Shown one piece after another: positions 329 through 61,200 of a stretch of DNA of 64,000 nt (the stretch's first letter is position 1; each line of letters starts with the position of its first letter). The notes under the pieces were generated by a model. It was not told the DNA's origin, searched no databases, and saw only the letters and a program-made list of their open reading frames with translations. Position numbers and translations under genes: made by a program. This DNA is from Paragordius varius. Lineage: Eukaryota; Animalia; Nematomorpha. Where the stretch lies: positions 8,432,001-8,496,000 of the forward strand of contig OZ176054.1 in the NCBI GenBank assembly GCA_964247055.1. The letters run 5' to 3'.

Positions 329-1548
329 CGGATTTTTGAATTGGCTATTAACGAATTTGATTGTGTCTAAAGTTGATTCGAGTTTGGATGCCATTGAATT
401 GACATTTAAATCACGCTCACCAATCAGACCAGCTATCTAAATATACATTATGACTTATGAGAAGAGATATTGCAATTTTTGTTTAAATTGTATCCAATTT
501 TTAACGTTTTAAGTATAAATGCCAATATGTATTTGCTATTTAATTATTTACATAATAATAAAATACTTATCAATAAAATATTGAATTTAATTTAACTTAA
601 CCAAACTGTTAAAAACTAATTTACTTATTCCGGTTATAAAAAAATCGATGAAAGAAATTTTCTAAAACCTGAATGTCTTGCATATATTAAAACTAAGAAC
701 CATTTACTAAAAATAATCGTTGCAATCCTTTAATAATCTTGGTTTTTATGAACTAAATTGGGACCTGATATGTTCATTAAAAATTTTATATTTTTAAAAA
801 CTCGTCCTACATTCGGATTATATAACAAAAATGTATACATAAAATTTTGGCAAAAGAAAATTTTTTTTCATCGCAATACATTTAGCGAAAATATATTTGA
901 TAAAAAAATAAGGGGAATTAGGAATAGATTACCTGAGACACAAAACCCCCAAGACTAGATTTGAGTTGCAATAATTTACCCAACCCTTTTTCAATCACGG
1001 TTGGAAAGAAAAGAAGTCTGAGCGTATGACCAGTAGGTGCTGTGTCAAAAACAACGACAGAAAAATCCATACCCTTTACTAATCTGAATATTAAATTGAA
1101 AAAAAAACTTCATAACTTCTGCATAACTCATGGCTTCGTCTATACCAGGAAAAGCTCCTACTAATTCCTTAATTACAGATTTTCCCATAGACCAACTATC
1201 TAAGATTTAGTTAATATTAAACCATTGTCGGAGAAGTAATCATCAGGCAATTCGTTAATTCCTAAGTTCGGATCTATTTCCTGAATTTTACAAGACTAAT
1301 ACCATAGCAAATAAATTATCAAATCCATTGACCTTTGTTGGAACTTTAGAAAATTTTTGATCAAAGGCATCTGATATATTATGGGCAGGATCGGTAGATA
1401 TAATCAAAACATTTTCTCTAACTTTAGCTAGTTGAACAGCTAAACTGCAACTACAAGTAGTTTTGCCAACACCACCCTTTCCACCCACAAAAATCCACCT
1501 TAATGATTTTTGCTCAATAATATTTTTGCAGGTCGTCAGATCTCCCAT
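329..1548 (-). CDS. ASNA1: ATPase ASNA1/GET3 (TRC40, ArsA family), 5' five exons; gene continues beyond the left edge
   Basis: Exons 1303-1548, 1223-1280, 1109-1199, 933-1083 and 329-436 join in phase through GT-AG introns of 22, 23, 25 and 496 nt. Product has [14 protein letters not shown] (P-loop), [38 protein letters not shown] and ends ...SQFKNP, colinear with metazoan ASNA1. Confidence 0.96.
1084..1302 (-). other. Three micro-introns in ASNA1: 1281-1302 (22 nt), 1200-1222 (23 nt), 1084-1108 (25 nt)
   Basis: Each is GT...AG. Removing each restores the conserved reading FAM|EIDP, DN|DSW and VMK|LVKG; retaining any of them shifts frame or introduces a stop. Confidence 0.93.
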
Positions 1549-2476
1549 TCAAAAGTATATCATATGGTTTAACATTTAAGGCGTTGATATTTAGTTTCAC
1601 GATATCAGTGGCATATTAGTGTTTAAAAGATTATCCTGTAAAAACTCTTAAAAATTATTTTTATTATTATCTAGTTTAAAATTTTACCAACTAAAAAATT
1701 TAGTCAAAAGTGATTATCGTCACAGAGTTATTATGAAATATTTGTCGCTCGACCAGAAAGTAAAAAATATATTTTCAAAGAATGTTATCATAATAATAGT
1801 TATTTCTAGAAAATAAAATCTTTGTTATTCAGATAAGGCGCTAAAAGATGGTTCGCAATATTTTCTACATCATACGAAAGGTAGAGTCTAAATTAGCTGA
1901 TTCTAATTGACTTTGTAAGGTATTATATTTGAAAGTACTAACGTTATAGCTGTGTATTTTTGGTTGGGGTTCAACTGTAATAACTTTTTTTTGATACGTC
2001 ATCTCTGACTTTATGGATATCGTGTCTGTTGACTTCTGTTTATTTTTATCTTTTACCGCTTTTAAATATTTCAATGTCGTATTGTTTCGTTCCTTTATTG
2101 TATCCCTTCTTGTTTTTACTATTGTCCTCGTTTTCTCTATTCTTAATACAAAATCATTTAAATACCTTCTCCAAAGAATACCATATATACACCAAAGTAA
2201 AGTTATTTTCTTTTCGACAACGTTTGTTTACAAAATTAATCAAAATGAGCTGTTGATAACTAATTTTATTCGTTACCCAAACATTATACGATAATAGCCC
2301 TCCTTTCAAAGGCCACAAGAAATTTCTTCTTTTTTTTGGTGAATCTACCTCTTAAACTATGGTGACCAGATTTTTTGAAGGAAAAAGCGGGACAAATCTG
2401 AGAAAGGGGGGGCATGGGGGAACGAAAAAATTTTATACGAAAAATTAGTGTAATATTTATTTATTTTCAACACAAA

Positions 2477-3070
2477 TATATATTTATAAAAATGGAAAGT
2501 GGTGACTTGATCTGTTTCCGACCGGTAGACCCACTCAAATCCAAATGTCAAAAATATATAATTATTTGAATGCCCCAACAATAGCTTCGCCCATTTTTGA
2601 ATTAGGTCCCCAGTTTGGGCCCACCCGGCGTAAAAAACGTATTTTTTTGAAAACACAAGTCCACAAAAATCGTGTCTTCGAGACATTTTTCCGGAAAACG
2701 TGTTGGACCATTCGATTTCAAATATGATTTTTTTACCTATTTTCGATTGAGCCAGGCAAAAAATTTAACTTAGTGCTTTTTCCATATCAGCCTATGGGTA
2801 TAGGTCTACCGGTTTAAAACTGATGTCATAAAAAATTGGCGTGCCTTTGGAGCTAATTTTCAAAAAACTTAAGAACCCATACGAGTTTAATAAAGGCTTT
2901 AATATTACCCATAAAAACTAATTATAAGCTGTTTTTTCCGTTAGCCGTCAATTTGGGGCCTTTACACCAGTAAACAATATATTAGTGTGAATGCACCCTT
3001 TTGAAAATCCTATAATAATAAGATCATAGCTAATAAATAATGTTCGAAATAATCCACATATATGGATCCT
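2477..3070 (+). mobile_element. Partial copy of the local non-autonomous Helitron family nested in the hAT element
   Basis: Starts TATATATTTATAAAAATGGAAA and is colinear with the 5' parts of the copies at 19541 and 49781. No 3' hairpin/CTAG is visible. Confidence 0.72.
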
Positions 3071-3071
3071 T

Positions 3072-4125
3072 TTATTGATCCCTTTTTCTCCCAAAAAACT
3101 TTTCCAAAGTTGTAGGACATTTGTCCTGTAATAAAAAATAGGATTTTAAAGGATCATACATTTTTAAAATTCTTTCGATAGCTGGCAGAAGAGCTAACCA
3201 ACGAAAGTATTTTTTGATTTTGAACTTGAACTTTCGCATTTTCACAGAATTCCTTAAGCGTTTCAACGCGTACCGTGTATAAAAAATAGGAATATATTTT
3301 AACAACTACATTTTAGACATATAGGTGCAACAAATTAGCAGCTGTTTGAATAGCTTTGTGTATTATATGCGCTGCACACCACGCCAATAATGTTTTGATG
3401 AGGATTATCGCTAATTTATGAAAAATATTTTTTGTCACCCTCCTTGCTTTTCCACCGAAGTTCGTATTAGCGTTGTCAGCGCAATATGCGATGATTTTGT
3501 CTTTTAAATTATTTTTTTCTATGAAGTAAAAATTTGTCGGAATTTTCACCGGCTAGAGAAATAAAATCTAAAATTTTAATTTTTATTCCGGTTTCTGGAT
3601 CAAAATATCTTATTAAAATGGGAATAATTTTGTTTCTTTGTGATTTGATGCATCAGAGTATAGAGATATGAAATTAATTTTCAGAAAATATTTTTGTATT
3701 TCAGAAAATGCATGTGGCGAAAAGACATTGCATACAATGGCTTCAGCCTTTGTACGGGTACATGTAAATTTTTTATTGAATAAGGTACGAATAACCTGTG
3801 AGGTACAATCCATAGATCTAAAGGAATGTTTGTGATTAACGGCGTGAAAGATAAAACGCCTTCGGCTAGTGCCAATCTCTTTTATTCCTCTAGCGGTTTT
3901 TCGATAAAAATCGCTCATTTTGTAAGATGATGCCGCCATATCTAAACATTTTTTTTATTTCTGTGTTTCCATATGTTTTGTAATATCACGCTTGTCGCCA
4001 TGTGCTAGGGTGAATTCCCCCTCGCATAAAGAACATTTAACAAACGATTCATTTTTTGTTTTTTTGATAAAATGAACTTCTTTCATTAATTCATTCTTAT
4101 ATTTACAACCTATTTTGTACTCATA
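3072..4125 (-). pseudogene. Frameshifted, 3'-truncated hAT transposase
   Basis: Fragments in several frames: zinc finger CSLCEGEFTLAHGDKRDITKH, HSFRSMDCTS, SDASNHK (catalytic D), CADNANTNFGG, CAAHIIH, RWLALLPAIERIL. Confidence 0.87.
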
Positions 4126-6378: not shown

Positions 6379-6428
<50 letters not shown>

Positions 6429-12400: not shown

Positions 12401-14731
12401 TTTTTGGGTTAAAAGACTTTTTGAAGGCGATAAATTAGGGGTGACCTCATTGCTTTCTGTACCGTTCATAATAAGGTTCATTTGTTGTGTCACATCTTGT
12501 AATGAATGAGAAATTTTGGATAGCCTATTTATCTTACTACTATTACTACCAGTGGTTTGATTTAAAGAAGGTTCATGGGTAGGGGTCTAAGGGGTAAAAT
12601 ATATATTATTTAAATACATATTTGGAATCATATTGATTTATGATAATTGAATCTTACAAAAAAGAGTGATTTAGTATCATGTCCATCGTCAATGACATCT
12701 CTATTCTGGTTTTCAGATTGAGTTTTAGTCGTTTTATTTACAGAATTGGTTTGACCAGAATTTAATAGGGAAGAAGCACCAAGTGAATCCAAGGAGTTAA
12801 TGGGCTGTTTTTGTATTGCTAAACATTTTTCTTTCATATCAATTTTTGGATCTATCCCATTCTCTCTAGTGGTATTCTGGAAGCTTTTACTATTTTTTGA
12901 AGCTTTTTTATCCTTTTCCACCATGTTTTTAGATTTAGCCGTGTAAATCTTTTTGTTCGTTTTAATGCCATTACTTTTTTTCACAAATGAATCAACTTTC
13001 TTAGCAGATAAGGGAATAATATTAACAGGACGTGGTTGATGATCATTCAAAAAATATTCAACAATATTCTCGGTGTTGTTGGGGTAGTAAACTATATTTT
13101 TATACTTATTTTTATTCTCTATCCCATACAATTCTTGAATGAGATAACAAAGTCCATCACAAATTAACTTTTGTTTTAGGGGTTTTATAACGTAACCACC
13201 GGTACTACCATCTCGACTACTTTCAATACTAGCTAAAGTTATGTGAACTTGGTGGTTGAGATCTATTATTAATGAAAAAGAAATAATGCTTAAGGTGATG
13301 AAAAAAATTATATTAAAATATCATAATTGATGCATGTATGAGTCTTATTCTAAAATTAATAATATGAAAAGAGATATGACTATCCTTTAGTCTGAATTAT
13401 AATTTTTAAGCTTTCACAATCTATAATTTTCGTACTAATGTGCGTTTGTATCAAATTTAATATTCTTATAATGCATACTAAGCGATTAGTATGAAAAAAT
13501 ATAGTAATATCATGATAAATGATTGAATAAATTTGTACAGTCGGCAATTTTTGCAAAAAAATTTAAATATTACAAATAAAGGTTTATACGTTTTTCAAAT
13601 CATATAGTCATGTAAAATTTCGCGATAATTTCATCAATAAAATATGTCACTATTATGTCAAATCAATTATAATCAAACCATCTACTATTTCAATTAAAAC
13701 AGAAATTAATCCAAAAATATTTAATTAATGTACCAGTTTCTTGAGTATTGCAACATATTACAACAGGATACTGTGGTAATTGCTCAAGTTCTTTTGCCGA
13801 TGGCACATAGTCTTCAGAAATAGCAATCGTATTTGTTAACACATCGACACAACATGGATTCTTATTATTATTTATGGAAAAATTGGTAGTAGACTGAGAT
13901 TCTTTTTTAGGATGACTAGAAGATGTTGGCGATGTACATTCCTGAATTTTATTTTCATTTTCGAGGGAATTATTGGTTAAGGAATTATTATTTTTGGATT
14001 TACGAAACAAATTATTGAGTTTGGAGGGACTTAAACGGATGTTTGATAAAGATGTCCGTGATACATTACCATTGTTTGCTAATGAATCTGTTTTGGAAAA
14101 CTTGTTACCACCAGATAATTTATATATTAATTCGGGACTTATCATATCGTTTGCTTTAAAGATTTGACTACAACCAGCATCAAAACTTTGGACAGATGTT
14201 TGCATACATGGATCATTTATAATATACCTTATAATAAAATGAAATGGGTTTACTGTAAGCGTCCATTATACAATTTTTCCTTAGCACAAAAAAATAGCGT
14301 TATGGATATTTTTACATCACAATCAAATAGAAATTCTATCCTATAATCTGAGGCTTTATCTCTTCTATATCATAAAAATAAATAGATACTTTGTAATTTT
14401 AATTGAATCCTTTCGTATATGAAGTAAACACTTGAGAGTGCGTACAGGTTCAAACCATAATGGAGCTTTATATGGAAACTTTAATTAAACAAAAATAAAC
14501 TAATGTTGGTTTATTGCCTAAATATTTCAATTCACTGATATCACCAAACAAAAACGTTTCAGGAGTCCTTCGTTCAAATCTATGTCCTCCCATAATATAA
14601 TATGGTGCAAAAAAAGATGCTTTGTTTATAAATAATGTACTTTTTTCAGGTAACAAATCTTTTTCCCGTAAATCATCGTTAGAACTTGAATCAAAAATCC
14701 ATGTTGACACAATTCCGATTACATTGCCCAT
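5107..14731 (-). CDS. MGRN1: E3 ubiquitin ligase MGRN1/RNF157 family (Mahogunin RING), about 1372 aa in 19 exons
   Basis: Phase-consistent exon chain: 14641-14731, 14501-14619, 14390-14478, 14254-14364, 13734-14227, 12658-13262, 12418-12586, 12241-12335, 11519-11763, 11038-11163, 10220-10377, 8827-8962, 8018-8340, 7803-7944, 7610-7670, 6952-7404, 6670-6830, 5506-5963, 5107-5189. Motifs: MG start, [97 protein letters not shown]. The low-complexity internal exons are less certain than the conserved ones. Confidence 0.9.
6384..6426. repeat. (TA)n microsatellite in an MGRN1 intron
   Basis: About 21 consecutive TA units. Confidence 0.95.
9175..9910. mobile_element. Foldback-like MITE with long TIRs built from 21-bp tandem units
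   Basis: Left arm TACCATTTACACTTCAAGAGTGTCC plus 7 x TTGAACAATTCAAGTTGGTCC; right arm is the reverse complement with 5 units. TA-rich flanks. Lies in MGRN1 intron 8963-10219. Confidence 0.88.
10625..10947. mobile_element. hAT (Buster/Charlie-like) MITE
   Basis: Termini CAGGGGGTGTCCAAC and GTTGGAGACCACTG. Flanks TATTAAAA and AATTAAAA form an 8-bp TSD (7/8, central TA). Confidence 0.8.
11183..11461. mobile_element. Shorter member of the TACCATTTAC foldback-like MITE family
   Basis: TACCATTTACAATTCAAATTCACC with 21-bp-spaced GAACAATTCAAATT units; ends GTAAATGGT. Lies in MGRN1 intron 11164-11518. Confidence 0.72.
14228..14640 (-). other. Four micro-introns in MGRN1: 14620-14640 (21 nt, in-frame), 14479-14500 (22 nt), 14365-14389 (25 nt), 14228-14253 (26 nt)
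   Basis: All are GT...AG. The last three are required to keep the conserved frame. The 21-nt one is inferred because it removes a 7-aa insertion relative to orthologues. Confidence 0.87.
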
Positions 14732-29408: not shown

Positions 29409-29422
29409 TATATATTTATATA

Positions 29423-29460
<38 letters not shown>
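29409..29460. repeat. (TA)n microsatellite
   Basis: Long TA run with a few interruptions. Confidence 0.9.
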
Positions 29461-29467
<7 letters not shown>

Positions 29468-34778: not shown

Positions 34779-36161
34779 ATGTTTCAATTTTCTTTGATGA
34801 TAACTCTTATTTTAGGCTTTTCAATACTAAATCCCTCCTCTATCGTTTCATTTATATTATCTAATGTTACAAATAATGGTAATGGTAATAAAACTATTTT
34901 GAAAAATATGTCATTGGCACATCCACCTCAACAACCCCAACACTTACCGGAGGAAAGATTCAAATTTTTTTTCTACATGACATGTATGCCCATCATAATT
35001 ATCCTGGGTATATTTGGAAATATTTGTATCATATTGGTTTGTTCGTTACAAAAAACAACTTCCACTGGATACAGGTATAGCACATATTTAGTTATAGTTA
35101 AATTTAATATTTTATCCTACGATAGATATAATAACCATACAAAATATCATTGTGCATAATTTTTATGGGCCCTGATGTGATATAATATAGTTTTAGTTAT
35201 GGTACGAATGAATTTAAACCACATGATTCCCAAATCCCTATAAATATTTTTTCTGTTAATTATGTAGCATTCCTCGGCATTTTAGGCCACATGCATTCTA
35301 ATGTAGCAATTTTAAGTTATAAAATTGATCGGGCACTTATGAAAAAATAAACAAAGAACCGTTTAGTTTTTTATGAAAAATTAATCGTAGAAAATATTGA
35401 TAATAATTTATTTCGGATTATTTGAATTATGAATATGTTACTAATCTTCTTTATGTTGTCACTTTACATTTCTGTTTGTTTGATTAATTTTTGCTAAAAT
35501 ATAGTATATTGTATAGGATTAAATATTTTTTGGGCAACATTGTACTAAAAATTTTTTTGACTTTTAACACCTCTTATACAAAAGTATTATAAGTACAAGA
35601 ATTTTTTGTGCAAATTCATGGATCCATTTACATGCACTCATATTCTTTTTTATATTAAATATCATCACTGAATTATTTAAAATTTAGAGCTCCCTCCACT
35701 TAAGTCATTGTTTATATATTTTTGGATTAATGAATACAACTTTGATATCTCATTCTTAATAATTTTTCATCTTTCGTTTAAATTTAATTAAAAATAATAT
35801 TTATTAAGCCATGTAAAAAATTAACTAAACTAACTAACTGTTTAAGATCATTTATATTCTATAAGGATATTATGCTATTGTGTGCAATTATGAAAGCGTT
35901 TATAAGTTATTAATACCTCCTAAATCATTTTCGTGATACAAAAAATTTTGATATCATGTTGCTTATATTCCTACAAGATAATTATTATTGCTATTCTTAA
36001 TATTTTTTGATCATTTTTTTATGCATATTTAATTAATTTTTGGTTTTTAGTTCCATATAATGTTGCTTCTTGTGACATACAAAAAGAGGAGACAGACGAC
36101 TGTCAGCCTATCCTCATTTATTAAGACTTTTATATGTTTTAAGAGTGTAATTTGGAAAATT

Positions 36162-36201
<40 letters not shown>

Positions 36202-39200
36202 ATAAACTATCAGAATCGTGCTGCTAATATGGTTAATTGAATTTGACATTTCGATATACAACACATTTATATAGATATATAAACACCATACCTTGAGACA
36301 AATGCGCTAGGGAATATATATATATATATATATATCGCTCCAATCCCTCAAATATACAAAAATAGTCTAGAAAAAACTAATTTGTGGTAATTATTGCGTT
36401 AAAATGATATTAATATTGTCGTTAACTAGAGATGACGGTTTAATCACATTAAACATATCTATTAAAATTTCTTTTGTGAATTTTATTAATGTTTAATATA
36501 TTTAGGATGTCTTAAATCCAATTTTTAAACGTACTAAAAAGGGGAATAGATACTTTTTGCACTTAAACATTATTTTAACTTTTTTGACTGCTATTTCTGA
36601 TATTCAACTTTATTTACATGATCTTAGAATTTAAATATATGATTTAAAAAACATTGGCTTTAACTTAACAACCTCTTACTCGTTAGTTCTGCGGTAAAAA
36701 CGAATATGACAAATGGTGATAAGCCACATAAATCAATATATTTTGAAAAAGCATAATACCTGAAGAAGGTAACATCAAAAGTTACCATAATTTTACCGCT
36801 ATAAGCAAAAAATTTTAACATGAAATTATTGGAATGATATCTTATGGTACTATATAATATATATATATATAAAATAATGGTATTTTTACTAAAAAAAGTT
36901 AAATTTCGTATTAATCAATGGAAAAGTAATTGTAGTCTTTAACAATATTTTACAATATGTTATTTAACATTCATTTGCACATTTATATTTGGACTATTCT
37001 TATATTAAAGATTAAATGGCCAAAACGTAAAAACAAATTGAAAAAAACAGTCATACTTTTTAAATCCAACATTTTCCATATAAATCAAATAACAAATGTA
37101 AAATATATAATTAAATCCGTTACCAATTGACAACGTAATTGCTTTTTGTTTTACCTAAAAAATATGAGTGTTTATCTAAAAAAAGATTTGTATTTTAGTT
37201 TATACGTTTTCTACCGCAAACGTGGAAAACATTTCTAAATCACAAGAAAACTTAAAAAGCAGCATGAAAATCCTGATGCATTTTTGGAACAGAATTAATG
37301 TTTTTCATCGGTTTTGTGTGCACTGTTAAAATTGATTGCGTCTATATTTTAACACTCTCAAATCTAATAATATTTATTGGCAATATATTTTTACAAATGC
37401 GACCTGTCGGTTTTTTGAAATGAAAATGCGGCCCGCGAAGCCATTTATGTGCGGCTCTCCAAAATAGTTATGCAGTCCGCGAGAAATTTTAAAAAATACC
37501 AAATATAAAATTTTTTAATTAGAAAATTCCTATTTACAAAATCTAAGTAAAATTCATGATTCTTAAACAAATTATCTGAGTAAGTTTTCCCAAATTTTGG
37601 CAATGAACTAGCAAAAATTGTTAAAATATATAAAGTACTAGCGTGAATCTCGTGCTGCTACGCAGCCCGAGGAAGTCCTTCGGACTTCTGGGGGGGGGGG
37701 GGTTCGAAGTTTGGATTTGAATGGGTCTACCGTTTTTCCTGTAGATCACAGCCAGCATTTTCCATTTTTATAAATATATAGATTACCATAAATAATGTTT
37801 TAATATCCATATATCTTTTAACATGCTATACATATGATAGATACTCCTTACTCAGCAGCTATCATCAAAGAAACGCTTGACTAAAATTTTTGCCTTTTAA
37901 CAGGGAATACGTGGAATCTTTATTGAATTTTTACGGTCTCATACCTAGGGCGAAAAATCGATTTAGAAAATTATTTTTGTGGACTTTGTTTTTTGAAAAA
38001 AATGGCATTTTACGGGGGGAGCGGGTAAAAAGAGGGCCTAAATCAAAAAAGTGACTCGACTATGTTCGGCGCAATCGAAAATAAGTAAACAAAAATCATA
38101 TTTGAAATTGAATGGTCCAACACGTTCTCCGGAAAATTGTCTCAAAAACACGATTTTGTGGACTTCTGTTTTCAAAAAAAACCCGTTTTTCATACGGGGT
38201 GGGCCCGAACTGGGGGCCTATTTCAAAAAAAGGGCGAAGCTATTGTCGGGACATTTATTAATGATTATATTTTTTCGATATTTGGATTTGATTGGGTCTA
38301 CCGGTTTTCCTGTACCAGATCACAAAGCCAGCATTTTCCATTTTTATAAATATATAGATGAGGATAAATAATGTATTAATATCCATATATCTTTTAACAT
38401 GCTATACATATGATAGATACTCCTTACTCAGCATCTATCATCAAAGAAACGCTTGACTAAAATTTTTGCCTTTTAACAGGCAATACGAAAAATCTTTCTC
38501 GAATTTTTACAGTCTCATACCGTGGGCAAAAAAATACAATCAAAAAAATATTTTTGTGGACTGTTTTTTTTGAAAAAAATGGCATTTTACGGGGGTAGCG
38601 GGTAAAAAGAGGGCCTAAATCAAAAAAGTGACTCGACTATGTTCGGCGCAATCGAAAATAAGTAAACAAAAATCATATTTGAAATTGAATGGTCCAACAC
38701 GTTCTCCAAAAAATTGACTTAACCCATTTTTCACACGGGGTGGGCCCGAACTGGGGACCTAATTCCAAAAAAGGGCGAAGCTATTGTCGGGGCATTCATT
38801 AATGATTAAATTTTTTCGATGTTTGGATTTGAATGGGTTCACCGGTTTTCCGGAAACAGATCACAAAGTTATATGAAAAATCAGTTTTTAGCGGGTAGCT
38901 CCTTACCCAGCAGCTATCATCAAATAAACGGTAGACTAAAATTTTTGCCTTTTAACAGGGAATACGTGGAATCCATATAGAATTTTTACGGTCTCATACC
39001 TAGGGCGAAAAATCGATTTAAAAAATTATTTTTGTGGACTTTGTTTTTTGAAAATGTGGCATTTTACGGGGGGAGCGGGTAAAAAGAGGGCCTAAATCAA
39101 AAAAGTGGCTCGGCTATGTTCGGCGCAATCGAAAATAAGTAAACAATAATCATATTTGAAATTGAATGGTCCAACACGTTCTCCGGAAAATTGTCTCAAA

Positions 39201-42200
39201 AACACGATTTTGTGGACTTCTGTTTTCAAAAAAAACCCGTTTTTCATACGGGGTGGGCCCGAACTGGGGGCCTATTTCAAAAAAAGGGCGAAGCTATTGT
39301 CGGGACATTTATTAATGATTATATTTTTTCGATATTTGGATTTGATTGGGTCTACCGATTTTCCTGTACCAGATCACAAAGCCAGCATTTTCCATTTTTA
39401 TAAATATATAGATTTACAGTCTTATGTTTAAAATTTAATAAAAAATATATATATGTCTATATAATATTGGAATGCGGCCCGTCATTTTAGTCGCAAATTA
39501 GGACCGCGAAACTATTTGTGTTGTACACCCATTAGAGTAAATAATTTTCTCATTGAGTTAATCTTATTACTAAAACGATGGCTTGTAATATAATTGTCTG
39601 TGACATATTTAAATTTCGACAGGCTACGATTAGATTATGTCTGCCTATGATACACATTGTTAGACAATATTGGAATTAAAATATCTTCTTTCCGAGACAA
39701 ATCATAAATGGCCCATTACTCAAAAATCTAAAAGTGGAAAAATTTAGATATTGAACCAATACTTTTTTAAAAAAAATATTATTATTCATTGTTTTTCATC
39801 CAATCTTTGAAGATAATTTAAAAAAATGGTATAGTAAAATAGTGATAGTTTATGAGCAGGATTGGCTTAAATTGATTTATTTTACAATATTATTTCGCTT
39901 AAAATTAATTGTTATCATCTGTTGTATGTGAACAGCTTTTTTTAAAAAAGCAAAAATGTTGCTTGAATTTTATGTGATAAATTTATTTCACCACAAAAAT
40001 AGATATTGGTTTCTTAATTAAAATGCGGAAAAAATAACATGTTAATTGTTTCTCGCCATTTCTTCACTTAAATAATGTTTTTTGAAACTAATAAATTTAA
40101 AATGTTTAAATAAAATAAAAAGGTAGGATGGTGTAATATCGATTTTATTCACATACATTAAATTGGAATTCGATACTTAAACCATAAAATCTTTAAACCT
40201 GAATTTTGAAAATCGTTTTTACTTTGGTTATAAAAAATATGATTGAATACAAAACACTGCACAAAATTGATAAAATATTTGAAGCTAGAAGGACGTATCA
40301 AAATTAGTTTTTAGGGGGTTATTAAAAACGTTCCAACTTCATCATAAAATCCAAAATTTAAATCACCCGTGCAAATAGATCAAACAGTAAAAGATTTTGT
40401 TACTTATATCTTGATCTGTGTTATCAAAAATCTCTCACACTAAATAGAAAAATATTACGTATATAATTGGAAGTTTAAGAGTGTCTTTTTTACCTTACGT
40501 CATTTCATAAAAATAATTAACAAACGCAGATGTATTATATTTACATATAGCCAATTAAAAATTTGAAAAGTATTATTTAATTGGCTAATAATTTTATAAT
40601 TGTAGGGGTTGTTTTTTTTATACATTTTAGTCCTTTAAAATATATGAGTACAATAGCTTATTTTTCATTTAATCCACGACATCAGTTTTTTTTTATGGTC
40701 TCCCAAATTATATCATTTATGTTTATTGTGTTATTTATACATAAAAATACCAATGTGGATTAGCAGTTTTAAAACACACTTGTCCTATTAAATTTTGAAT
40801 TTTAGCTATTACAAAGCTATCTAATTAAATGATTTTAAAAATTTGTGATTTTGGATAATTGTTGATTTTGTAAGTTTCAAAAATAAAAGCAGCATGAAAA
40901 TTCTGACATTTTTCCATAAAAATAGATATAAATTCATTCAAATATTTTTGAATCCTATTTTACTCTATGAATAAATAATTTGGATAAATTTTTAGATCTT
41001 TTAATACTACATTACCTTTTCACTTTTTTGTCCAAGTTTACCTTTTGGGGCTATTTTATATCCCAGAGCTAAATTTCGTATAAATAAACTAGTTTTGAAA
41101 GTTATTTTAGTTAAAATTTAATTACTATAGATTATTGTCGTTTAGATAAAAAAGTTTATATTTTTTACAATTTTGTGACTTCTAGAGCCTAAAATCGAAA
41201 CAGCTCCAAAACTGTTAAACGAACAGCTGATATTTAAAATATGTCAAGTTTTTACTGCTGGTAAAATGTAGCTTAAAAGCTTCTTTAAGAGAATTACTTA
41301 CATTTATATAATATACATTTATTTGTCCATAGAATTAGTAGCGATTCCAAAAAATTTAAAGAAAAAATAGCGGCAAAAATTTTTTACAATTTTGAATTTT
41401 TTAAAAAACATTTTTTGTATAATGTTCCTCAAAGATTACAGAATGCATATTTTTAAATTCGGCTCAATACCTTAGATAATTTTTATTGTTCAAGTTTCAA
41501 ATGGCTCTGGGGTATAAAACTATCCCAAAAGGTAATAGGGTGTTAATGCACAAATCAACAGTTTAAATTTTTATCTGGCAACAGTAATAATTAAAAATTA
41601 TAGCGTTTTTATCTGTTTAAATTTATGTAGCAAATTAACAAATAAAACAATAAAATTGTAGGAGACTGTGAATGGAGCATCGATGGCTATGGCTATAATA
41701 TAATATAAATTAACACTCTCCATTGAAAAGCTATATAGTAGAATTACAATAAATCAATCATTAATTTTTTATTTTAATTTGAATTCTAGCATCCACATCC
41801 TAATAAATTAAACAATAATTAAATCGAAAAAAAATGTATTTATAAAGTGAGGCACACGATAATATGCATCCAAATTATGAATAAATATGTGGACTCCTAA
41901 AAATAAAATTATTATTAGTCTTGACTAAGCACGAACATTAACTGTGTACCAACTTATAATGAAATTTATCAATTTTATATAAATTTTATCCAAAACCACA
42001 CGTATGAGACTTACGATTGCAATCCTAAAAAATTGCTATAAAATGTTAATTGAAACATAGGAGTTGAAACAATGTTTTTATTATTATAGCCAGTCCTTTT
42101 TAACATAAATTGTTCGTTCGGGCCGATAAAATACAAATCACCTTTTGGCATGCAAATGAAATTATGAATGATTAAAAATTGGAACATGTTAAATTAAGGA

Positions 42201-45200
42201 AATGCTAACTTAAGTTTAGACTCTAAAATTTACAAGACTGCAAAAAATAAAACTTTTTTTATTTATGATATTTTAATGATCAAACATTCAATTTAGGGAG
42301 GTATAATGATTCCGGTGAGCCCATATATTTTACAATGTCGAAAATTTTTCAAAATTGCTATTACCAAATGATTTATTTGTTATATGATATTTATTTTATC
42401 ATAAATGCATAAATAAAGTGTTTTAATTATAATAAAATAATATATTTCGGGTAGATACATAAATTTCCTTGCATTATCGGACCTTTTCTCATGCATTATG
42501 ATGATCCCTTGGCCAGTCCTTCAACTCATGGCGCATACCAAACGGTGGCCACTCAATTATAGTTTTGAATGGAACTTCTTTTTGGCCCACATCAGTTTTG
42601 TCCTTATTAACGGTTTCATGAAAACTGGGATCCTTATAACTTGCGCCCTAACAGCTGATCGATATACGGCTCTGTATTTCCCACTCCGTTACAAGGATTG
42701 GAGTAAGCCATCACGGGTTAATTGGATCATAGCTTCATGTTTTATTTTATCGTTTGGCCTTATGATACCACGGACATTTAAATTCAAAGTTTTTCAACTA
42801 TCAACTCGGAAACCGGAAAGTTTTATTGGGTATTACAAAAAGGCACGTGGTCTCTTTTTATCCAATGATGAAGAGTTTAGTAATTATAATATTACTAATT
42901 TTAATAATAATACAAATATCTCAACAACTTTAGCACCGAGCCCAGTATTTAACCATAGCAACTATTATTTCACTTTAAACAAGCATTATAAAACGCACAT
43001 TGCTCTTATATATGATTGGATACGGGAAATCGTGCTAACAATCATTCCCTTAATCCTAATTATTTTTCTTAACATTCAAATACTGGTTAAATTTCGAGAG
43101 GTTATGCATAAAAAACTCAATCTCACAAAACAGAAAGTAGTAACCAATGAGAATGTGGTTCCTAATCAGAATCAACTTGAAACAACTGCCGATAAAAATA
43201 TTAGCTACGAGGGAGCCAATGATGAATATAACTCTGAAACCATCTATTCCAAAAATCAAGGTATATTTGCGTTCACTAAAATAAAATAAGAATTATAAAA
43301 GGTAAATACAAACACTGTTAAAATATATATTTCACCCAAATAATTAAAAAGTTGTTATATCTATTTTAATAGTTGGTTCGATGAATGTTCTTAAAGACCG
43401 TGGTTATGACCAATATAAATACCAGAAAAATGGATATATCAAATGTTATAAAATAAAAAAAATATTATTTAACTAAACACTCATTACATTTTCAATTTTT
43501 TGTGTGAATTACATTTGGGGTAGTTATCTACCTCACAGCTTAAATTAGTAAACAATTTATTGTTTAATTTGTTTTATTTTAAATTTAATTCACTTCTGTA
43601 TTGAATAAAAATTAGATTTAACAGTTTTTTAACTTCTAAAGCTCCGAATTCAATCGCTTCAAAACACGATGGAAACGAACAGCTGATATTAAAATTAAAT
43701 ATCAAAAATTTGCTATTTCAAAGTTGATTATTTATATATTTCAACCATAATATGCATTTATTTGCCTGTTGTATTCACGATTTAAAAAATTAGAGAAAAT
43801 GGCAGAAAAAAGTTTTAAATGAGGATTCTACAATTTTATATTTTCTTTAAAAAAAATCTATCATACGCCTAAGCTAAAGAAAGCATATAAATTTAGCACA
43901 ATGCCAAAAATATTTTTTAAGATATTCAAAAGGTTATAAAATGTGAAAAACCGGTTTACATAGTAAGTATAAGCTATTTTTTGCCAATTGTGTTACAAAA
44001 ATTTATTTTATCTAATTATAAGGTTCGCTATATGAATACAGCGAGTACGATGATAAGAACGAAGATTATGATAGCGATGAGTTTGGTGAATTGGATAAAG
44101 ATACTGAAGGGAATTCCACATCTACAAATATAACTGTATCTTTGCCCACTGTACAACAACATGGAAACAACAATGGATCTCATACAGCAAAGTCAATGCG
44201 GCCATCTGTTTTACAATACAATAGTAATAATAATAATGTTAATAATGCTAATAAACATTTATCCATTCCACAAATTACAGTTGATTCACCCATAGAATCG
44301 AATTCCGAAGAGAGCAAAAGATTGTTAGAAAACACCAATCAATCCTTCAAAGAAACAGATCTTGATTCTCCAAAACAGCCAATAACAAATGCTCCAATAT
44401 ATATAGAAACTGATCTCGATGACAAGCTTAATCAAACAAAAACTTGTTTAAACAACATGCCAACTATAAATACGTGTAATCAACGGCTTTTAGGCCTCCC
44501 GCCAAAACGCATAGGTCCAAATCGACCCAAGCTACAAAAATCTCTGCAAACCGTTATGGCTAAACGGCGAAAAATAAGCCATTTGCCTGAAGCCTTCATG
44601 AGAACAGTAAAATCAGCCGGGGCAAAAATGTCACCGGTTAAAAGTAAGGCCACGACTCAAAATAAACAACAAAAAAAGAAGAAAGCCAAACACGAAAGGG
44701 ATGAAAGACGCTTAACTTCCATGTTAATCAGTATAGCAGTCCAATATATAATATGTTGTGTTCCACAAGCAATAACCGCCCTAATTGACAATCCGACTCT
44801 GCGACACGAAAATACGGCTTTCCGAATAAATATCATAATTACAAACGTGCTTGAGGCATCATATTATGTCCTAAACTTTTACGTGTACCTCCTTTTCGTC
44901 CAAGACTTTGCCAAACAAACTAAAAAGGCTTTACAATACGTTTTCAACAAGTAATTGGATGATTTTTAACACAGTATATTATTTTTTAATGACCACCAAT
45001 TTATGATTGACCTTGTAAGATTAGAATATTGAATACAACAGTATGTAATTTAGAATTATATAATTAAAAAAACGATATTGGTGAATTTTTAGCTAAACGG
45101 CTAATAAATTAAAAATATCAAGAGGAATTTACTCTCCAAGATAAAATAGATAAAATCTTTTAAGCAATTATTTGCACCTGCATACCATTCTGAACCATAC

Positions 45201-46649: not shown

Positions 46650-48433
46650 TTAAACTGAAGTGTATCTCATATACGGTTTGCCTGAAGGCAAAGGAAAAAC
46701 AGTGTGTTTGGGATAAAGTTTTTTAGCTTCGTCCTCTGACACATTTGGTTGGATCATACATTGTGTTCCCGGCTATAAAAATTTAACCATTGACAATTAA
46801 ATCAATTTTGTAAAAAATATTTTTTTAAATAATTTAAATATTTTTGCAAAAAAATTACTTTCCAATCCACTGGAGTTGCCACTTTTTCACGCGTCGTAAG
46901 TTGAATGGATTCAATGGCTCGTAAAATTTCACTGTGTAAATAAGTAAATTTGAAATTCATAAAAAATATTTTTTTTGTAAAAAAAAGTGTTTTTTGGTTT
47001 AGTTAATGGTGTCACATTAATAAAACGCAACTATTCAAATATATGGAAAAATTTAATTTGAGAAAAAAAAGAAAATTTTCAAAAAGACATAAATCGCAAC
47101 AATTGACATTAAAATAAATGTAGAATGATTATATAAATTAACGCTTTGGCATTGGTTTTAACTGTCGTATGTCACATTTTACAAATACTATTAGAGATCT
47201 CAAAATCAATGCACTTCAATTGAAACTTTTCTACAATTAAATGTTAAAAAACATGGATCGTTCATTAAACAAAATAGAGAGGGTTGGTACCTTTTAAAAA
47301 TAAGTCCACCGATTACTAACTAAATTTTTATTTATTCCTTAAGGCACCAAATTTGTTTAAAATATTCATATTTTTAAAATAATTGTCGTCCTAAAATGAA
47401 CTCTATATTAAAATACAAAAATAAAACCGTTCCTCAATAACTGAAACTAGAATAATTTTTTAAGAAGTTAAACTACCAGATTATTTTCAGCTGAAACCGA
47501 ATTCTAATTAAAGCTTAGATACAAGGCTCTGGTTAAATGATTCCGTTACCACCCCTATAATCCAAACATCGATAAAATTTAACAAAATTCTAATTACAAT
47601 GAGCAGGCAGGTAATATTGAAAGACGATAAGACACGACGCCACTCTTAAAATAGAATTAATTATTAATCAACTACCAGCCATTCGGTAGATCCTATACAA
47701 CATGGTTTGCAATAACCAAAGATCTCAAAACGCTTAATTTAAATAGAAAAATAGCCAAATCTAGAAATAAATAGAGAAAGTGCAACGCCATTTTATGGCA
47801 AATCCTTTTGCGTATGTATATACATGAGATGTAACAAAAGCTTTATACATATATGGTGCTAGAATATTATTAATTACTCGAAATTCCTGCCAGTAGTAGC
47901 TGGATACAAAAGAGAAAGCTTAAGCTTTTTGTCAGGACTGAAGAGATATACGGCTCTAGCAGTCAAAGGTATTCCTTGTGGACCAATTTCATCGGGATCA
48001 AACATACCCAATTTAGTTGCTATTTCACGTTTATGATCATCAATCAAAGGGTATGGGTAATCACCGCTTAATTTACCTAAACACTAAATTAAAAAAAGTA
48101 TGTTATAAATTCATATTTCAAAGATAACTGTATATATATAATATATATGAACCTGAATATCTTTAATCCAACCTTTATGCGCTTCCAACGTATCACAAGA
48201 TAAACCAATGGGTTTAACATTGTGCATCTCAAATTTTGACGCTAATTGCGCAGCTCTGGCCAATTCTGTCGTACATACTGGGGTGTAATCAGCGGGATGC
48301 GAAAAGAGAATCCCCCAACTAAAATGTATATTTAACCTTTATAAGCATACCTATTTCCAAAATAATCGTGTAATTTAAATTTTCCTGCAGTAGTAGAAAC
48401 TTCAAAATTTGGGATGGTATCTCCTAGCAACAT
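46650..48433 (-). CDS. PRDX6: Peroxiredoxin-6 (1-Cys Prx), about 216 aa
   Basis: Exons 48351-48433, 48153-48318, 47878-48083, 46859-46931 and 46650-46772 join in phase (introns 32, 69, 946 and 86 nt). Motifs: [53 protein letters not shown]. Confidence 0.96.
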
Positions 48434-48712
48434 GTTTTTTTAGTGACCCAACCGTAGAAAGTATTTTAAATCATAACCACCATGCCTCAGTACGAAATGC
48501 CTCAAATTTTAAAAATGATGGCCAAGGTATATTTATTGCATTAGTTTAGGATGGAACAGTCGATGTATTAAAGCGTATAGGTTTAACACTTTTGAAAAAC
48601 AATGGTATTATATCTAAGTTAGAATTTCTTGGCATAAAACAGTTACCTTACAAAATCAAAGCTCATGGTCATTCTAACCTTAAAGGACAGTAAATACATC
48701 ATTGACTCTTAG
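48319..48712. other. Micro-introns in PRDX6 (48319-48350, 32 nt, minus) and MRPS6 (48527-48549 and 48690-48712, 23 nt each, plus)
   Basis: All are GT...AG and each is required to avoid a frameshift or stop in a conserved protein. Confidence 0.93.
48434..48481. promoter_or_regulatory. 48-bp interval between divergent start codons of PRDX6 and MRPS6 (shared bidirectional promoter region)
   Basis: PRDX6 ATG ends at 48433 (minus) and MRPS6 ATG starts at 48482 (plus). Both N-termini align with orthologue N-termini. Promoter function is inferred. Confidence 0.7.
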
Positions 48713-55010: not shown

Positions 55011-55305
55011 GGATAAGATCGGGATTTAATTTTGGGGACTGTGAAATATAACTGAAAATGCTATTTATTATTATCCGCAATAGATCAAAGACAGGATCTA
55101 AATAGCAAAACGGATTGAATTTAAATTTTTAAGCAGTCTTTAAAGATTTATTAAATAAACAATAACATTATTTAAAAATTATCATAACCAGTTATCTTTT
55201 TTGATAACATTTCAATACGAAATGGGGTCGCGACCTCAACACAATTCAACATTCACATTCATTTCAATTCGACTCAGATTGAGGTAGTTACCCAGGCCTG
55301 TTTAA

Positions 55306-58054: not shown

Positions 58055-58284
58055 GGCTATCATCAATAAAATAGGCCATATCACTTTGTATAAAATTTTC
58101 CTAAAGACCTGATAACTCACCGATAGGAAATTTCTAGTAATATTCTTATTTTAGATGTTGACATTTTTATATTATTTTCCTGGATAGCAAATTAAATTTT
58201 GTATTGTATAAATGTTCTAATTTTTGCGGAACTACTTTTACTATTAACAGCTTGTTTTACTTAAAAGGTTGAGGTTTCAACAGC

Positions 58285-61200
58285 ATGGTCATTCAGAAAT
58301 CTGAACCATATCCTACAATCACCAAATCTAATCAATTCGATGATTTAGAAGATATCGGCGAAATAAAAGAAAATGGATTGCAAAACGCATATTTTAGCGA
58401 TAATGAGGATTATGTAGATGATATAACGGATGAAGGTAATTTATTATACATTTTAGAATTGTTAAGCGATATACTCGCTCAGCGGCCTAAACCTCCCGAA
58501 AAATTTGATTCGCTTGTAATAGTGGATAATATACCCATTGTTGGCAAAGAAAAAATAAATAAATTAAAGGATGCTTTACGTAAAAAGTTTTCTTCAGCTG
58601 GTCCCATCATCAACGAATTTTATCCTGTTAATGAGGATGGAACAACCAAAGGGTTCCTTTATAATTCTAATAATTTATTAGTTATATGTTTTTAGAATAT
58701 GAAAGCGACAAATGTGCAAATAAAGCCATCGCTTTACTCGATGGCCATCATTTAGATAAGGCTCATATTTTACGAGTTAATGGTTTTGGCGACATTGAAA
58801 AGTATATATATATTTAACCTCTTTTATACCTTGATATAATTGATTAATTATTTTATTATAGATATGAAAATTTTAATGAAAACTCTGAACCACAACTGCT
58901 ATCATATAAAGAAATTGTAAGTTTTCATTTTTTTTTGAATAAAATATCAAACTTTTCTTCATACGATCTAAAAAAATGTCACTATAATACCGATTTTTCG
59001 GGTTGCTTTGCTTTTTCTTAGGCCATTCGCAAATTTCTTAAATATTTTAAATATTTAATTGCTAAATTTTAAATGATATATATTAATGTTTGTGTTAATA
59101 TCGTAGAAGCATTATTTCACACAAGATGTCTAATTTACAAATCTTTTAGGATAATCTTTACGATTGGTTATTACAAGTGGACGGAAACGATCAATTTATG
59201 GTTTTGGCTGAAAATGAAAATCACGAAAGTTTATTATCCATTTACCTCAATATTATAACCGGTCCTCAGTTAATCATAGAAAAAGAGGTATATTTTAGTT
59301 TTGATAACTGAAATATTCTACACACATATATATTCTATTCGTGTTTTAGACAAATAATTTGATTTAAATTATATTTTTGGTGTCATTTTTTTTAATATTT
59401 TATTTGAAATGTTCTCTTATCCTTTATAACATTGTTTTTTTATTCATTCATTAAAATTAATTTTTTTGTGGATAGCAATATAAATAAATATTTGCCGTTT
59501 TCAGATATTCTAATGATTCATCAATTAGCCTTTTTGTATTTTTTCAATAATTGGTCGCGATTAAAATTTAAAAATTATTCATGGATGTATTAAAGTTTGA
59601 AATAAACAGTAAACTAAAAACGTATTTTTGCTTTAAAAAAAATTAGAAATGGTCGGACAAAAAAGCATTTTGGTCACCTCAGGGCACCTACCTTGTAACA
59701 TATCACCCCAAGGGTGTCGCTCTTTACGGTACAGCTAATTTTGATCAAATCAAAAGGTTTACGCATCCCAACGTTGAATATGTCTTTTTTTCTCCTTGTG
59801 AAAGGTATGATTTATACTGTTTTATATATAAATATTTTTGGTTTGTCTATATAGAATGATATTTGGGCTTTTAATCAATATATATCTTTGAATAGATTAT
59901 AATTTTTTTACATTTTTTCTATAGATATTATTAAAGTGTTGTTACCAAAAATTTAGCAAATTCTAGATGCAAAATTTAAATTTAACCAGCTTACCTCTTT
60001 AGAATAAATAAATAGTTTCTATATTTTGTCTCTATTTGCACCTTAGATATTTCATAAGTTATTCTTCCAAACAAACATCGATTGGTGAACCTCTCATTCT
60101 GTGGGAAGTGTTATCTGGTGCAAAAGCTAAAGTATTCACTTATAATGCCACACCTATGTGCCTTGATCAACCATTTTGGCCACCTTTCAAGTATTTTCCT
60201 TTAAATATTAATTGTAATATTTTTATTTTTTTTCAAATTTTTATATGAAGAATTATTTTAGGGTACGTATATCCCAAAGTTTAGATTTATTTAAATATAG
60301 TACAAAAAGATATTTTGCTTAAAATATGATTATCAATATTGATTAGTTGTATATTATTTAAAATGCTTTACAGTTTTGTACTTGTTAAAGTTAAAAATTA
60401 GATAACACTTAAAGCGACTTGTAACAAACAGCTGGTAATGCATTTTTTCGCAAGTTTTTGAATTACCTCAAAAAATTTAAAATTAATTTGGCGGCTACGG
60501 GACTTTTACAATATTATTACTTTAAAAGAAATAATGTCTTTGCTATATGATTCATTTTTCTAAATTTGGCCCAATATCAGATGCTTTTTAAATCATTTGT
60601 GTTTGAAGGGTAAAAAATACCCAACAGGTAATAAAATATTTTAACTGCTATGTGTTATTTATTTTAATGTTAATCCATATTAGTGTTTGTTTTTTTATTA
60701 GAAAATAATATATAATGTTTGCACATGTGCATACAAGATATAACGACATTTTCTTTTTTCACCTTTGATAAATTTTTCATTTAAATATTAAACAGTGCTG
60801 TATAGACAAATAACTTTGAAAGTTGGGATAAATTTAGCTTATAACTTTTTAATTTCATATATTTGCTTAAATTTAAACAAAGAATATTAATTTTTACTAT
60901 AAATTTATATGATATACATTAAATTGTGTATTTTTTGTCTCTAATTTATGGCAACAAAGTTTTTTACTCAATTAAATTAACAAATTTTTTACATCATCAA
61001 ATGTTTTTGACCATATAAAACTGTGTCTATTTTTAACCCGTCTAATTTAATTTAATTGGATAATTTTTGTTTATTTTAAATAATAATTGCAATTTTATAA
61101 TTTTTAGATGGAGCTACGATGGTACATATTTTGCTCGAATATCCGCACCTGATACATTAGCCATATATAATATTCAAGTATTACCTACATTTTGTTGAAA

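Follow-up and report, generated by a model that had tools for sequence, protein, structure and literature searches.

The window, by which we mean the whole 64-kb stretch of DNA that was analysed, contains five genes (ASNA1, MGRN1, PRDX6, MRPS6 and EIF3B) with 41 introns between them, and in addition a GPCR gene (7tm_1). Its assignment to the phylum Nematomorpha agrees with EIF3B, which is 67% identical to the protein of the hairworm Gordionus and 40–43% identical to those of other phyla. Rebuilding the five gene models of a preliminary description of this DNA reproduced all of them, together with every one of the 41 intron lengths (Table 1). The EIF3B model was rebuilt with the Gordionus protein as a guide, and its intron lengths correspond exactly to those listed earlier. 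In MGRN1 the sole ambiguity is the placement of a 21-nt intron; the distal half of this gene is of low complexity, and the introns there are tentative.

Table 1. Genes and introns in the window, with distances counted from the ATG of each gene.
Feature	Position	Strand	Description
ASNA1	ATG 1548	-	introns 22, 23, 25, 496 nt
ASNA1 intron 1	1281..1302	-	22 nt, GT-AG, phase 0, 246 nt after ATG; not a multiple of 3, contains stop
ASNA1 intron 2	1200..1222	-	23 nt, GT-AG, phase 1
ASNA1 intron 3	1084..1108	-	25 nt, GT-AG, phase 2
ASNA1 intron 4	437..932	-	496 nt; first ordinary intron of the gene, 616 nt after ATG
MGRN1	ATG 14731	-	18 introns of the preliminary description, 5' to 3': 21, 22, 25, 26, 471, 71, 82, 477, 355, 660, 1257, 486, 73, 132, 205, 121, 706, 316 nt; their removal gives a single open 1373-aa frame
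MGRN1 candidate intron 1	14620..14640	-	21 nt, GT-AG, in frame, stop-free
MGRN1 intron 2	14479..14500	-	22 nt, GT-AG; frame requires removal; joins ...GNKPTL to FPYKAPLW...
MGRN1 intron 3	14365..14389	-	25 nt, GT-AG; frame requires removal
MGRN1 intron 4	14228..14253	-	26 nt, GT-AG; frame requires removal; micro-intron most distant from ATG (478 nt)
MGRN1 intron 5	13263..13733	-	471 nt; first ordinary intron of the gene, 998 nt after ATG
GPCR (7tm_1) intron 1	35075..42454	+	7,380 nt, starts 296 nt after ATG of the gene
PRDX6	ATG 48433	-	introns 32, 69, 946, 86 nt; complete 217-aa protein
PRDX6 intron 1	48319..48350	-	32 nt, GT-AG, phase 2, 83 nt after ATG
PRDX6 intron 2	48084..48152	-	69 nt
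MRPS6	ATG 48482	+	introns 23, 23 nt; 179-aa protein
MRPS6 intron 1	48527..48549	+	23 nt, GT-AG, 45 nt after ATG; frame requires removal
MRPS6 intron 2	48690..48712	+	23 nt, GT-AG; frame requires removal
EIF3B	ATG 58285	+	introns 21, 29, 60, 233, 359, 242, 917, 126, 517, 536, 286, 169, 354 nt
EIF3B intron 1	58436..58456	+	21 nt, GT-AG, phase 1, in frame, stop-free
EIF3B intron 2	58653..58681	+	29 nt, GT-AG, phase 2; frame requires removal
EIF3B intron 3	58802..58861	+	60 nt, 517 nt after ATG; first of the gene beyond the micro class; corresponds by homology to intron 3 of Gordionus (39 nt)

Twelve of the 41 introns form a minimal class that coexists, in the five genes, with introns of 60–1257 nt. 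Eleven of these micro-introns are 21–29 nt long and one is 32 nt, and the remaining 29 introns are all at least 60 nt. As had been claimed from the first reading of this DNA, all 12 micro-introns are proximal to the ATG, starting 45–478 nt downstream of it (CDS positions 45–410). The sole longer intron in this 5' zone is the 69-nt intron of PRDX6, 281 nt after the ATG, while the other 28 start at least 517 nt past the ATG and are no shorter than 60 nt. Micro-introns occupy the first ranks in each of the five genes, and appear in runs of adjacent introns (three in ASNA1, three or four in MGRN1, two each in MRPS6 and EIF3B). When intron ranks are permuted within genes, p is 2.6e-7 with all 12 micro-introns and 7.7e-6 with both 21-nt candidates left out, and the position-dependent pattern is confirmed as real and non-random in the five genes of the window. 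A de novo scan of the whole 64 kb, which required an open frame of 18 codons or more on either side and applied a codon-usage score, recovered no further convincing micro-intron beyond those already known; the remainder consisted of chance GT..AG pairs within exons, or of candidates with non-coding flanks. The start codons of PRDX6 and MRPS6 are separated by 48 bp, and it is this spacing only that suggests a position of the ATG close to the transcription start site (TSS).

All 12 micro-introns carry GT...AG ends, and ten of them are needed for the reading frame, being either not a multiple of three or interrupted by a stop. Exon 1 of ASNA1 corresponds to residues 29–105 of the human protein (6so5_A), and the next exons continue gap-free. 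With intron 2 removed, exon 2, made up of 19 codons and one split codon, spans exactly residues 106–125 of 6so5_A. Across intron 3, residues 154, 155 and 156 are the last of exon 3, the split codon and the first of exon 4, respectively. On human PRDX6 (1prx_A), exon 1 covers residues 5–30 and exon 2 residues 33–86, with the split codon in between. Placing MRPS6 intron 2 at 48668–48690 instead (also 23 nt) yields a worse protein. Relatives were sought for the last exon of MRPS6 and for a TMEM70-like ORF, and none were found. The 5' splice site of the micro-introns reads GTA in eight cases and GTT in four, and G is present at position +5 in one of 12 as against 10 of the 29 longer introns, all of these being small numbers. 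Their GC content is 0.14–0.30. The micro-introns are most probably ordinary GT-AG spliceosomal introns, whose excision we infer from these features. The sequencing runs that contain the locus are all DNA, and their contigs are colinear across the EIF3B introns of 21, 29 and 60 nt; no sequence words of the locus were matched in the RNA-labelled runs of the species. An Rfam scan of the window found no RNA genes, and hence no snRNA to inspect.

Both 21-nt introns, in MGRN1 and EIF3B, are multiples of three without an in-frame stop, so that neither is proven by its sequence alone. Introns of Paramecium whose length is a multiple of three tend to contain stops, in contrast to these two. Once the MGRN1 candidate is removed, the spacing is presumably nearer to that of the vertebrate protein, and the candidate is a plausible intron. 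The seven residues that the EIF3B intron would encode are absent from the annotated Gordionus protein.

Cross-species comparison of introns was made for EIF3B alone. All 13 introns of the gene in the window match introns 1–13 of Gordionus sp. m RMFG-2023 in both codon and phase. The position and phase of intron 1 are common to the first introns of Gordionus (43 nt), Lingula (484 nt), Soboliphyme (128 nt) and Oppia (391 nt), and those of intron 2 are common to introns of 40, 430, 1292 and 63 nt in the same four genera. The EIF3B micro-introns therefore occupy ancient positions, which indicates old introns that have shrunk rather than gains. The Gordionus introns, whose lengths are taken from an RNA-seq-guided annotation, measure 43, 40, 39, 40 and 82 nt, followed by introns of 205–7467 nt. 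The five shortest are thus the first five of 16, an arrangement with a chance probability of 1/4368. As judged from these gene models, the 5' polarity is common to the two hairworms for the one gene compared, and both show the same order from short 5' to long 3' introns. However, the minimum in Gordionus is 39–43 nt compared with 21–29 nt in the window, its zone of short introns extends farther, over five introns and up to 816 nt past the ATG, and its distal introns are far longer, reaching 7.5 kb with transposase genes inside. The edge of the zone also differs: intron 4 is 233 nt long in the window but 40 nt in Gordionus, and intron 5 is 359 nt in the former and 82 nt in the latter. Short-5' polarity in EIF3B is absent from nematode, mite and brachiopod. 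The nematode gene has introns of 48–63 nt all along its length, interleaved with others of ~2.3 kb, and the introns of Lingula are 141–536 nt throughout. In a second individual, the block 58196–58934, which includes the three short 5' introns of EIF3B (110 nt in all), shows two differences, at 58258 and 58471, both of which fall outside the introns. Pieces of long introns differ by ~5–8%. The comparison is consistent with strong constraint on the short EIF3B introns.

The GPCR gene departs from this arrangement. Its first intron joins ...TSTGY to RYINFLALSDLF (TM2), the next exon matches Pfam 7tm_1, and the intron contains repeat copies. The presence of such a 7.4-kb intron in the zone, taken with a zone edge that differs between the two worms, indicates that intron size is not dictated by position as such. 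For the five genes themselves, the earlier characterization of their long introns as kb-scale and filled with transposable elements was overstated. The longest is 1257 nt, and on self-comparison of the window a second copy exists for only 6.5% of the bases in these long introns. Of the window as a whole, 17% recurs elsewhere in it. Within the long introns of the five genes, only a single segment, in EIF3B intron 9, is clearly high-copy. With so little recognisable repeat, growth by insertion is unsupported for the long introns of the five genes.

The arrangement had been taken to lack a precedent, but microintrons clustered at the TSS have already been published for flatworms, namely Opisthorchis felineus and other trematodes, Schistosoma, Echinococcus and Macrostomum (Ershov et al. 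2019, PMC6530080). As in the window, flatworm genes combine a minimal class with kb-scale introns, and their microintrons are adjacent to one another and prefer the 5' end or TSS (PMC6530080). The flatworm lengths peak at 37 and 90 nt (class <75 nt) as opposed to 21–32 nt here, and the flatworm splice sites are reported to lie nearer to consensus (PMC6530080), whereas the 5' site of the hairworm seems, on small numbers, to be reduced to GT[A/T]. Because Platyhelminthes and Nematomorpha are different phyla, the pattern is of independent origin. Flatworms carry out spliced-leader trans-splicing, and we know of no such process in hairworms. Inspection by eye for spliced-leader acceptors ahead of the five ATGs shows AG-ended pyrimidine stretches upstream of MRPS6, EIF3B and MGRN1 and none upstream of ASNA1 and PRDX6, a distribution that speaks neither for nor against such acceptors. 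Smaller introns at the 5' end are reportedly mentioned in the genome paper of Schistosoma mansoni.

Animals were believed to have no introns of <30 nt until a 2026 paper, which places them in only two compact-genome parasite lineages, the myxobolid myxozoans and Dicyema japonicum (Hadjez et al. 2026, PMC13644364). These lineages resemble the hairworm in having <30-nt GT-AG introns at ancient conserved positions, a parasitic habit, A-rich stretches that precede the AG, and short introns beside short neighbours (PMC13644364). Their 5' site is reduced to 'GTa' (PMC13644364), and that of the hairworm may be similar. However, ultra-short introns are there the genome-wide median (22–27 nt) of compact genomes (PMC13644364), whereas in the window they are a minority restricted to gene starts in a repeat-rich genome. 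No 5' polarity is described by Hadjez et al. 2026 (PMC13644364) and Nematomorpha are unmentioned; our search of the available literature on Nematomorpha found no discussion of introns. The ciliates Paramecium and Nyctotherus have ~25-nt introns (PMC5014332) that are alike in length and in their near-complete occupation by splice signals, but there all introns are tiny and do not form a positional class. What is new is that tiny introns are stacked at gene starts instead of being scattered, and that they are smaller than the flatworm class and in another phylum. Hairworms would be the third animal lineage with introns of <30 nt, and the first of them whose genome is rich in repeats.

The explanation that we favour, while finding ourselves evenly divided as to whether it is correct, is that the micro-introns occupy ancient positions and have contracted to a minimum length particular to the lineage, and that the polarity is an evolutionary steady state and not a requirement of splicing. 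The minimum would be about 21–32 nt in the hairworm of the window and close to 40 nt in Gordionus. Hairworm introns would exist in two states, 'minimal', with little but splice signals and presumably recognised across the intron, and 'expanded'. The probability of the minimal state would drop steeply with distance from the 5' end in broadly expressed genes, a category that is assumed here from gene identity, and whose contrast class is the single GPCR. We infer a selection that would remove insertions from the initial few hundred bases of genes with constitutive expression. A general deletion bias could then bring 5' introns down to the size floor, where they may remain because they present a tiny target in which nearly all bases are signal, and distal introns would be free to expand. 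Of the mechanism put forward in the preliminary description, the half that combined shrinkage with a tolerant spliceosome is consistent with the ancient positions of the EIF3B micro-introns. The GPCR intron and the shifted zone edge speak against a strict positional rule.

A local mutational bias seems to us unlikely. Under it, breaks, recombination or repair concentrated in promoter chromatin would raise the number of deletions over the opening few hundred bases, and introns there would contract with no selection for smallness. Such a bias would fit the origin of the micro-introns by shrinkage rather than gain, and their lineage-specific polarity, but the GPCR retains its 7.4-kb intron 296 nt after the ATG. 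In addition, the short 5' introns lack indels or base differences between individuals where the long introns have many, the reverse of what a deletion-prone zone predicts, and the GC of the micro-introns (0.14–0.30) lacks the rise that recombination-driven biased gene conversion should bring. Chance among the five genes, or models that hide distal micro-introns or invent proximal ones, is largely refuted as a source of the pattern, and we consider it extremely improbable. In its favour, the sample is limited to five genes, the MGRN1 model is tentative in its distal half, and the 21-nt pair, in frame and stop-free, resembles chance GT..AG pairs that are common within exons. However, the permutation result persists without that pair (p = 7.7e-6, against 2.6e-7 with it), the EIF3B model is matched intron by intron to Gordionus, the de novo scan of 64 kb yields no other convincing case, and the alignments to the solved human ASNA1 and PRDX6 structures are unbroken over the junctions.

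Position-dependent splicing would account for the same distribution if introns shorter than ~35 nt could be excised only near the cap or promoter, for example with the help of the cap-binding complex or the CTD of early-elongating Pol II, and so survived only in the first ~500 nt. This we regard as quite improbable. In its favour, no micro-intron begins more than 478 nt past its ATG. With 48 bp separating the start codons of PRDX6 and MRPS6, the TSS of either gene, wherever it lies, can be no more than a few hundred nt away from their micro-introns, and the seemingly weak 5' sites (+5 G in 1/12 versus 10/29) could require assistance. Help from the cap-binding complex is, to our knowledge, known for the cap-proximal intron only, whereas as many as four consecutive micro-introns occur here. 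The polarity in Gordionus moreover occurs at ~40 nt, a length that many animals splice anywhere, and the nematode orthologue has 48–63-nt introns along the entire gene. In myxozoans and Dicyema, too, a conventional spliceosome handles <30-nt introns, which there form the median class (PMC13644364). That introns of up to ~30 nt can be excised only in the promoter-proximal transcript, through the early-elongating polymerase or cap factors, we hold to be very doubtful; if true, it would constitute genuinely position-dependent splicing, and would explain the convergent 5' clustering in flatworms.

The same polarity is present in a second hairworm with minimal introns of ~40 nt, and the similar pattern of flatworms is still unexplained. 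Since the arrangement recurs in two unrelated phyla, a general cause is likely and testable, and may lie in selection acting on DNA close to the promoter or in some property of co-transcriptional splicing at its early stage. Gene finders run with a default minimum intron length would be expected to leave the 5' ends of many hairworm genes truncated or frame-shifted.

The window has a G+C content of 25–35% and carries animal genes on both strands. Five of them (ASNA1, MGRN1, PRDX6, MRPS6 and EIF3B), called housekeeping on the strength of their names, contain introns of 21–32 nt, here termed micro-introns. Their 5' ends were read directly and all five models were then rebuilt by script, with the intron lengths of the preliminary description serving as constraints for all but EIF3B. 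Under these constraints ASNA1 and PRDX6 each have a single open path, the latter yielding a complete protein of 217 aa. MRPS6 and MGRN1 have two each, which differ solely in the placement of the second 23-nt intron and of the 21-nt intron, respectively. EIF3B was rebuilt independently, with the protein of a second hairworm, Gordionus sp. m RMFG-2023, as guide, and all 13 lengths were matched exactly. The lengths first proposed for the five genes are thus reproduced.

Features of the window, with positions in window coordinates
Feature	Position	Strand	Basis
ASNA1/GET3	ATG 1548, extends past left edge	-	gene model
Broken transposase-like ORF	3313-3939	-	
MGRN1	14731 to 5107	-	gene model
Minisatellite arrays, MGRN1 introns 9 and 11	9090-9390, 9652-9991, 11167-11259	-	
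MGRN1 intron 1 (21 nt, candidate)	14620-14640	-	
Repeat of about 2.1 kb, long copies	19539-21595, 49779-51845		
Broken transposase-like ORF	25920-26534	+	
Rhodopsin-type GPCR	ATG 34779	+	gene model
GPCR intron 1	35075-42454	+	
Repeat of about 2.1 kb, tandem partial copies	37844-39414		
PRDX6	48433 to 46650	-	gene model
MRPS6	48482 to 49064	+	gene model
TMEM70/TMEM186/TMEM223-family gene, intronless, 202 aa	54405-55010	-	Pfam PF06979, E 6.5e-8
Block with EIF3B exons 1-4	58196-58934		
EIF3B	ATG 58285, extends past right edge	+	gene model
EIF3B intron 1 (21 nt)	58436-58456	+	

The TMEM70-family protein has no detectable relatives in a search of 5.8 billion proteins. If the model of MGRN1 is right, its product has 1373 aa; vertebrate MGRN1 is less than half as long. 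The added length consists of long Asn/Ser/Lys-rich low-complexity inserts among the conserved N-terminal, RING and PPGF blocks, and part of these low-complexity 'exons' may be intronic ORFs.

Among the 41 introns of the five genes, the 12 micro-introns all start 45–478 nt past the ATG (CDS positions 45–410). A 69-nt intron of PRDX6 starts at 281 nt, and the remaining 28, which are 60–1257 nt long, start at least 517 nt past the ATG. Micro-introns hold the first ranks in all five genes, an order with a probability under within-gene shuffling of 1/4 x 1 x 1/4 x 1/3060 x 1/78 = 2.6e-7, or 7.7e-6 when both 21-nt candidates are left out. The 5' confinement noted in the preliminary description is therefore upheld. 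'Promoter-proximal' is read from distance to the ATG, and the one indication that the ATG lies near the transcription start is found at PRDX6 and MRPS6, whose start codons are divergent, head to head and 48 bp apart. This spacing implies either a tiny promoter shared by the two genes, with 5' UTRs that are very short or overlap, or else processing of some kind at the 5' end.

All 12 micro-introns are bounded by GT and AG. In ten, the length is not a multiple of three or an in-frame stop lies inside, so that the reading frame closes unless they are excised. Solved human structures provide an independent check on the exon junctions of ASNA1 and PRDX6. Exons 1, 3 and 4 of ASNA1 align with residues 29–105, 128–154 and 156–205 of human ASNA1 (6so5_A), the first residue of exon 3 corresponding to 126, and the space left over is filled exactly by exon 2 (20 residues) and one split codon. 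Exons 1 and 2 of PRDX6 align with residues 5–30 and 33–86 of the human protein. The other two candidates, the 21-nt first introns of EIF3B and MGRN1, are in frame and without a stop, and a scan of the window shows that chance in-frame, stop-free GT..AG pairs are common within exons; these two therefore need further support. The EIF3B segment shares codon and phase with intron 1 of Gordionus (43 nt), the brachiopod Lingula (484 nt), the nematode Soboliphyme baturini (128 nt) and the mite Oppia (391 nt), and the annotated Gordionus protein (...DDISDQ/ELLSDF...) lacks the seven residues that it could encode. Homologous position and protein together suggest that it is a real intron; the MGRN1 candidate is plausible only. 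Contigs from DNA runs read straight through the introns, every run containing the locus being DNA, and no words of this locus were found in runs labelled RNA for this species. At 21 nt the two candidates are the smallest introns seen, and retention of either would add just 7 residues. They may represent 'retention-safe' introns at the size limit, although with n=2 chance stands at about 0.2.

When one EIF3B exon of the window is compared with 1.84 billion representative proteins, the top hit is a Gordionus protein of 707 aa (61% identity, E 1e-21; assembly GCA_954871325); the next full-length match has 47% identity. The two hairworm proteins are 67.4% identical over 573 aligned residues, and identity to brachiopod, nematode, mite and shrimp is 40–43%. 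These values assign the window to a horsehair worm (Nematomorpha) other than Gordionus. The exon chains of the annotated Gordionus, Lingula, Soboliphyme and Oppia genes were reconstructed exactly from their genomic loci, and introns were mapped between species through pairwise protein alignments. All 13 introns in the window match Gordionus introns 1–13 in codon and phase.

Lengths (nt) of homologous EIF3B introns in the two hairworms
Intron	Window	Gordionus
1	21	43
2	29	40
3	60	39
4	233	40
5	359	82
6	242	1923
7	917	2337
8	126	724
9	517	205
10	536	6822
11	286	642
12	169	2226
13	354	474

In Gordionus, whose gene models were built using RNA-seq alignments, the first five of 16 introns are the five shortest (chance 1/4368), the same polarity as in the window, with a size floor of about 40 nt. 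Introns at homologous sites in Lingula are 141–536 nt without trend, those of Soboliphyme interleave lengths of about 60 nt and about 2.3 kb along the gene, and Oppia has four introns left. The five-species comparison indicates that the micro-introns of EIF3B are reduced forms of ancient introns, that the 5' polarity is confined to the two hairworms among these five, and that it predates the further loss of length (about 40 nt down to about 23 nt) in the window's species. The Soboliphyme set is itself sharply bimodal (48–70 nt versus about 2.1–2.6 kb), in near-regular alternation.

Pieces of long introns in contigs from another individual (run X4) diverge from the window at about 5–8% of positions; for example, 226 nt of EIF3B intron 4 carry 10 substitutions and 3 indels, and 185 nt of intron 5 carry 12 substitutions and 3 indels. 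A 739-nt block comprising 89 nt of upstream sequence, EIF3B exons 1–4 and the 21-, 29- and 60-nt introns shows two differences only (58258 and 58471), both outside introns and common to run X4 and the assembly's own sample. With divergence at 6%, the 110 nt of short intron should carry about 6.6 differences (Poisson p about 0.001). In this one further individual, the short introns of EIF3B are as conserved as exons. Over the stretch compared with run X4 (58196-59664), the species proves very diverse in sequence.

The data are best read as a two-state intron system with a 5' gradient, in which ancient introns close to the 5' ends of broadly expressed genes would be held at the shortest length that the spliceosome tolerates and distal introns would drift upward in size. 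The favoured cause is selection against insertions near promoters, with a deletion bias acting alongside it and minimal introns being stable as a 'small target'. Confidence is much higher in the descriptive part of this statement than in its causal part, and the statement as a whole has about an even chance of being correct. A promoter-focused mutational bias is an unlikely alternative, as a deletion-prone zone would not show the exon-like conservation of the short EIF3B introns, which is expected if nearly every base is a signal. Splicing assisted by the cap or the promoter seems slightly less probable again, and that the pattern is an artefact is very improbable.

The two-state reading does not amount to a strict positional rule. 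Intron 1 of the GPCR gene starts 296 nt past the ATG and is 7,380 nt long, so a long intron is tolerated and spliceable within the first ~500 nt. The edge of this zone also differs by species: EIF3B introns 4 and 5 are of minimal size in Gordionus and of ordinary size in the window. A probability gradient dependent on gene class seems to describe the pattern better than a hard boundary, the gene-class contrast being drawn from one gene, the GPCR.

The genome paper of Schistosoma mansoni reportedly describes smaller 5' introns. In trematodes and other flatworms, microintrons (length peaks of 37 and 90 nt) were reported to occur in clusters, preferentially near the transcription start and beside 3-kb introns, and it was suggested that intron definition is preferred at 5' ends (Ershov et al. 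2019, PMC6530080). The clustering resembles that in the window, although the phylum differs. According to Hadjez et al. 2026, the only animals with introns below 30 nt are myxobolid myxozoans and Dicyema, whose compact genomes have them as the median class; the text of that paper has no mention of Nematomorpha, and none of the hairworm-genome papers searched mentions introns. What is new here is flatworm-type 5' clustering in another phylum, with a size floor that reaches the myxozoan and dicyemid range.

The long introns were initially described as 'TE-filled'. This is not supported for the five genes, where most of the repeat content found consists of MGRN1 minisatellites, but it holds for the GPCR intron, which contains repeat copies, and for Gordionus EIF3B, which has DDE transposase genes inside its introns. 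The minisatellites have a 21-nt unit and translate as repeated NLNCSRT / SWSLNNS. The two broken transposase-like ORFs, of which the plus-strand one has a weak match to DUF4371 (hAT-associated) under Pfam's cut-off, are probably decayed DNA transposons. ORFs of the repeat of about 2.1 kb matched no Pfam family; its long copies are 81% identical to each other, and the tandem partial copies in the first GPCR intron are 97% identical.
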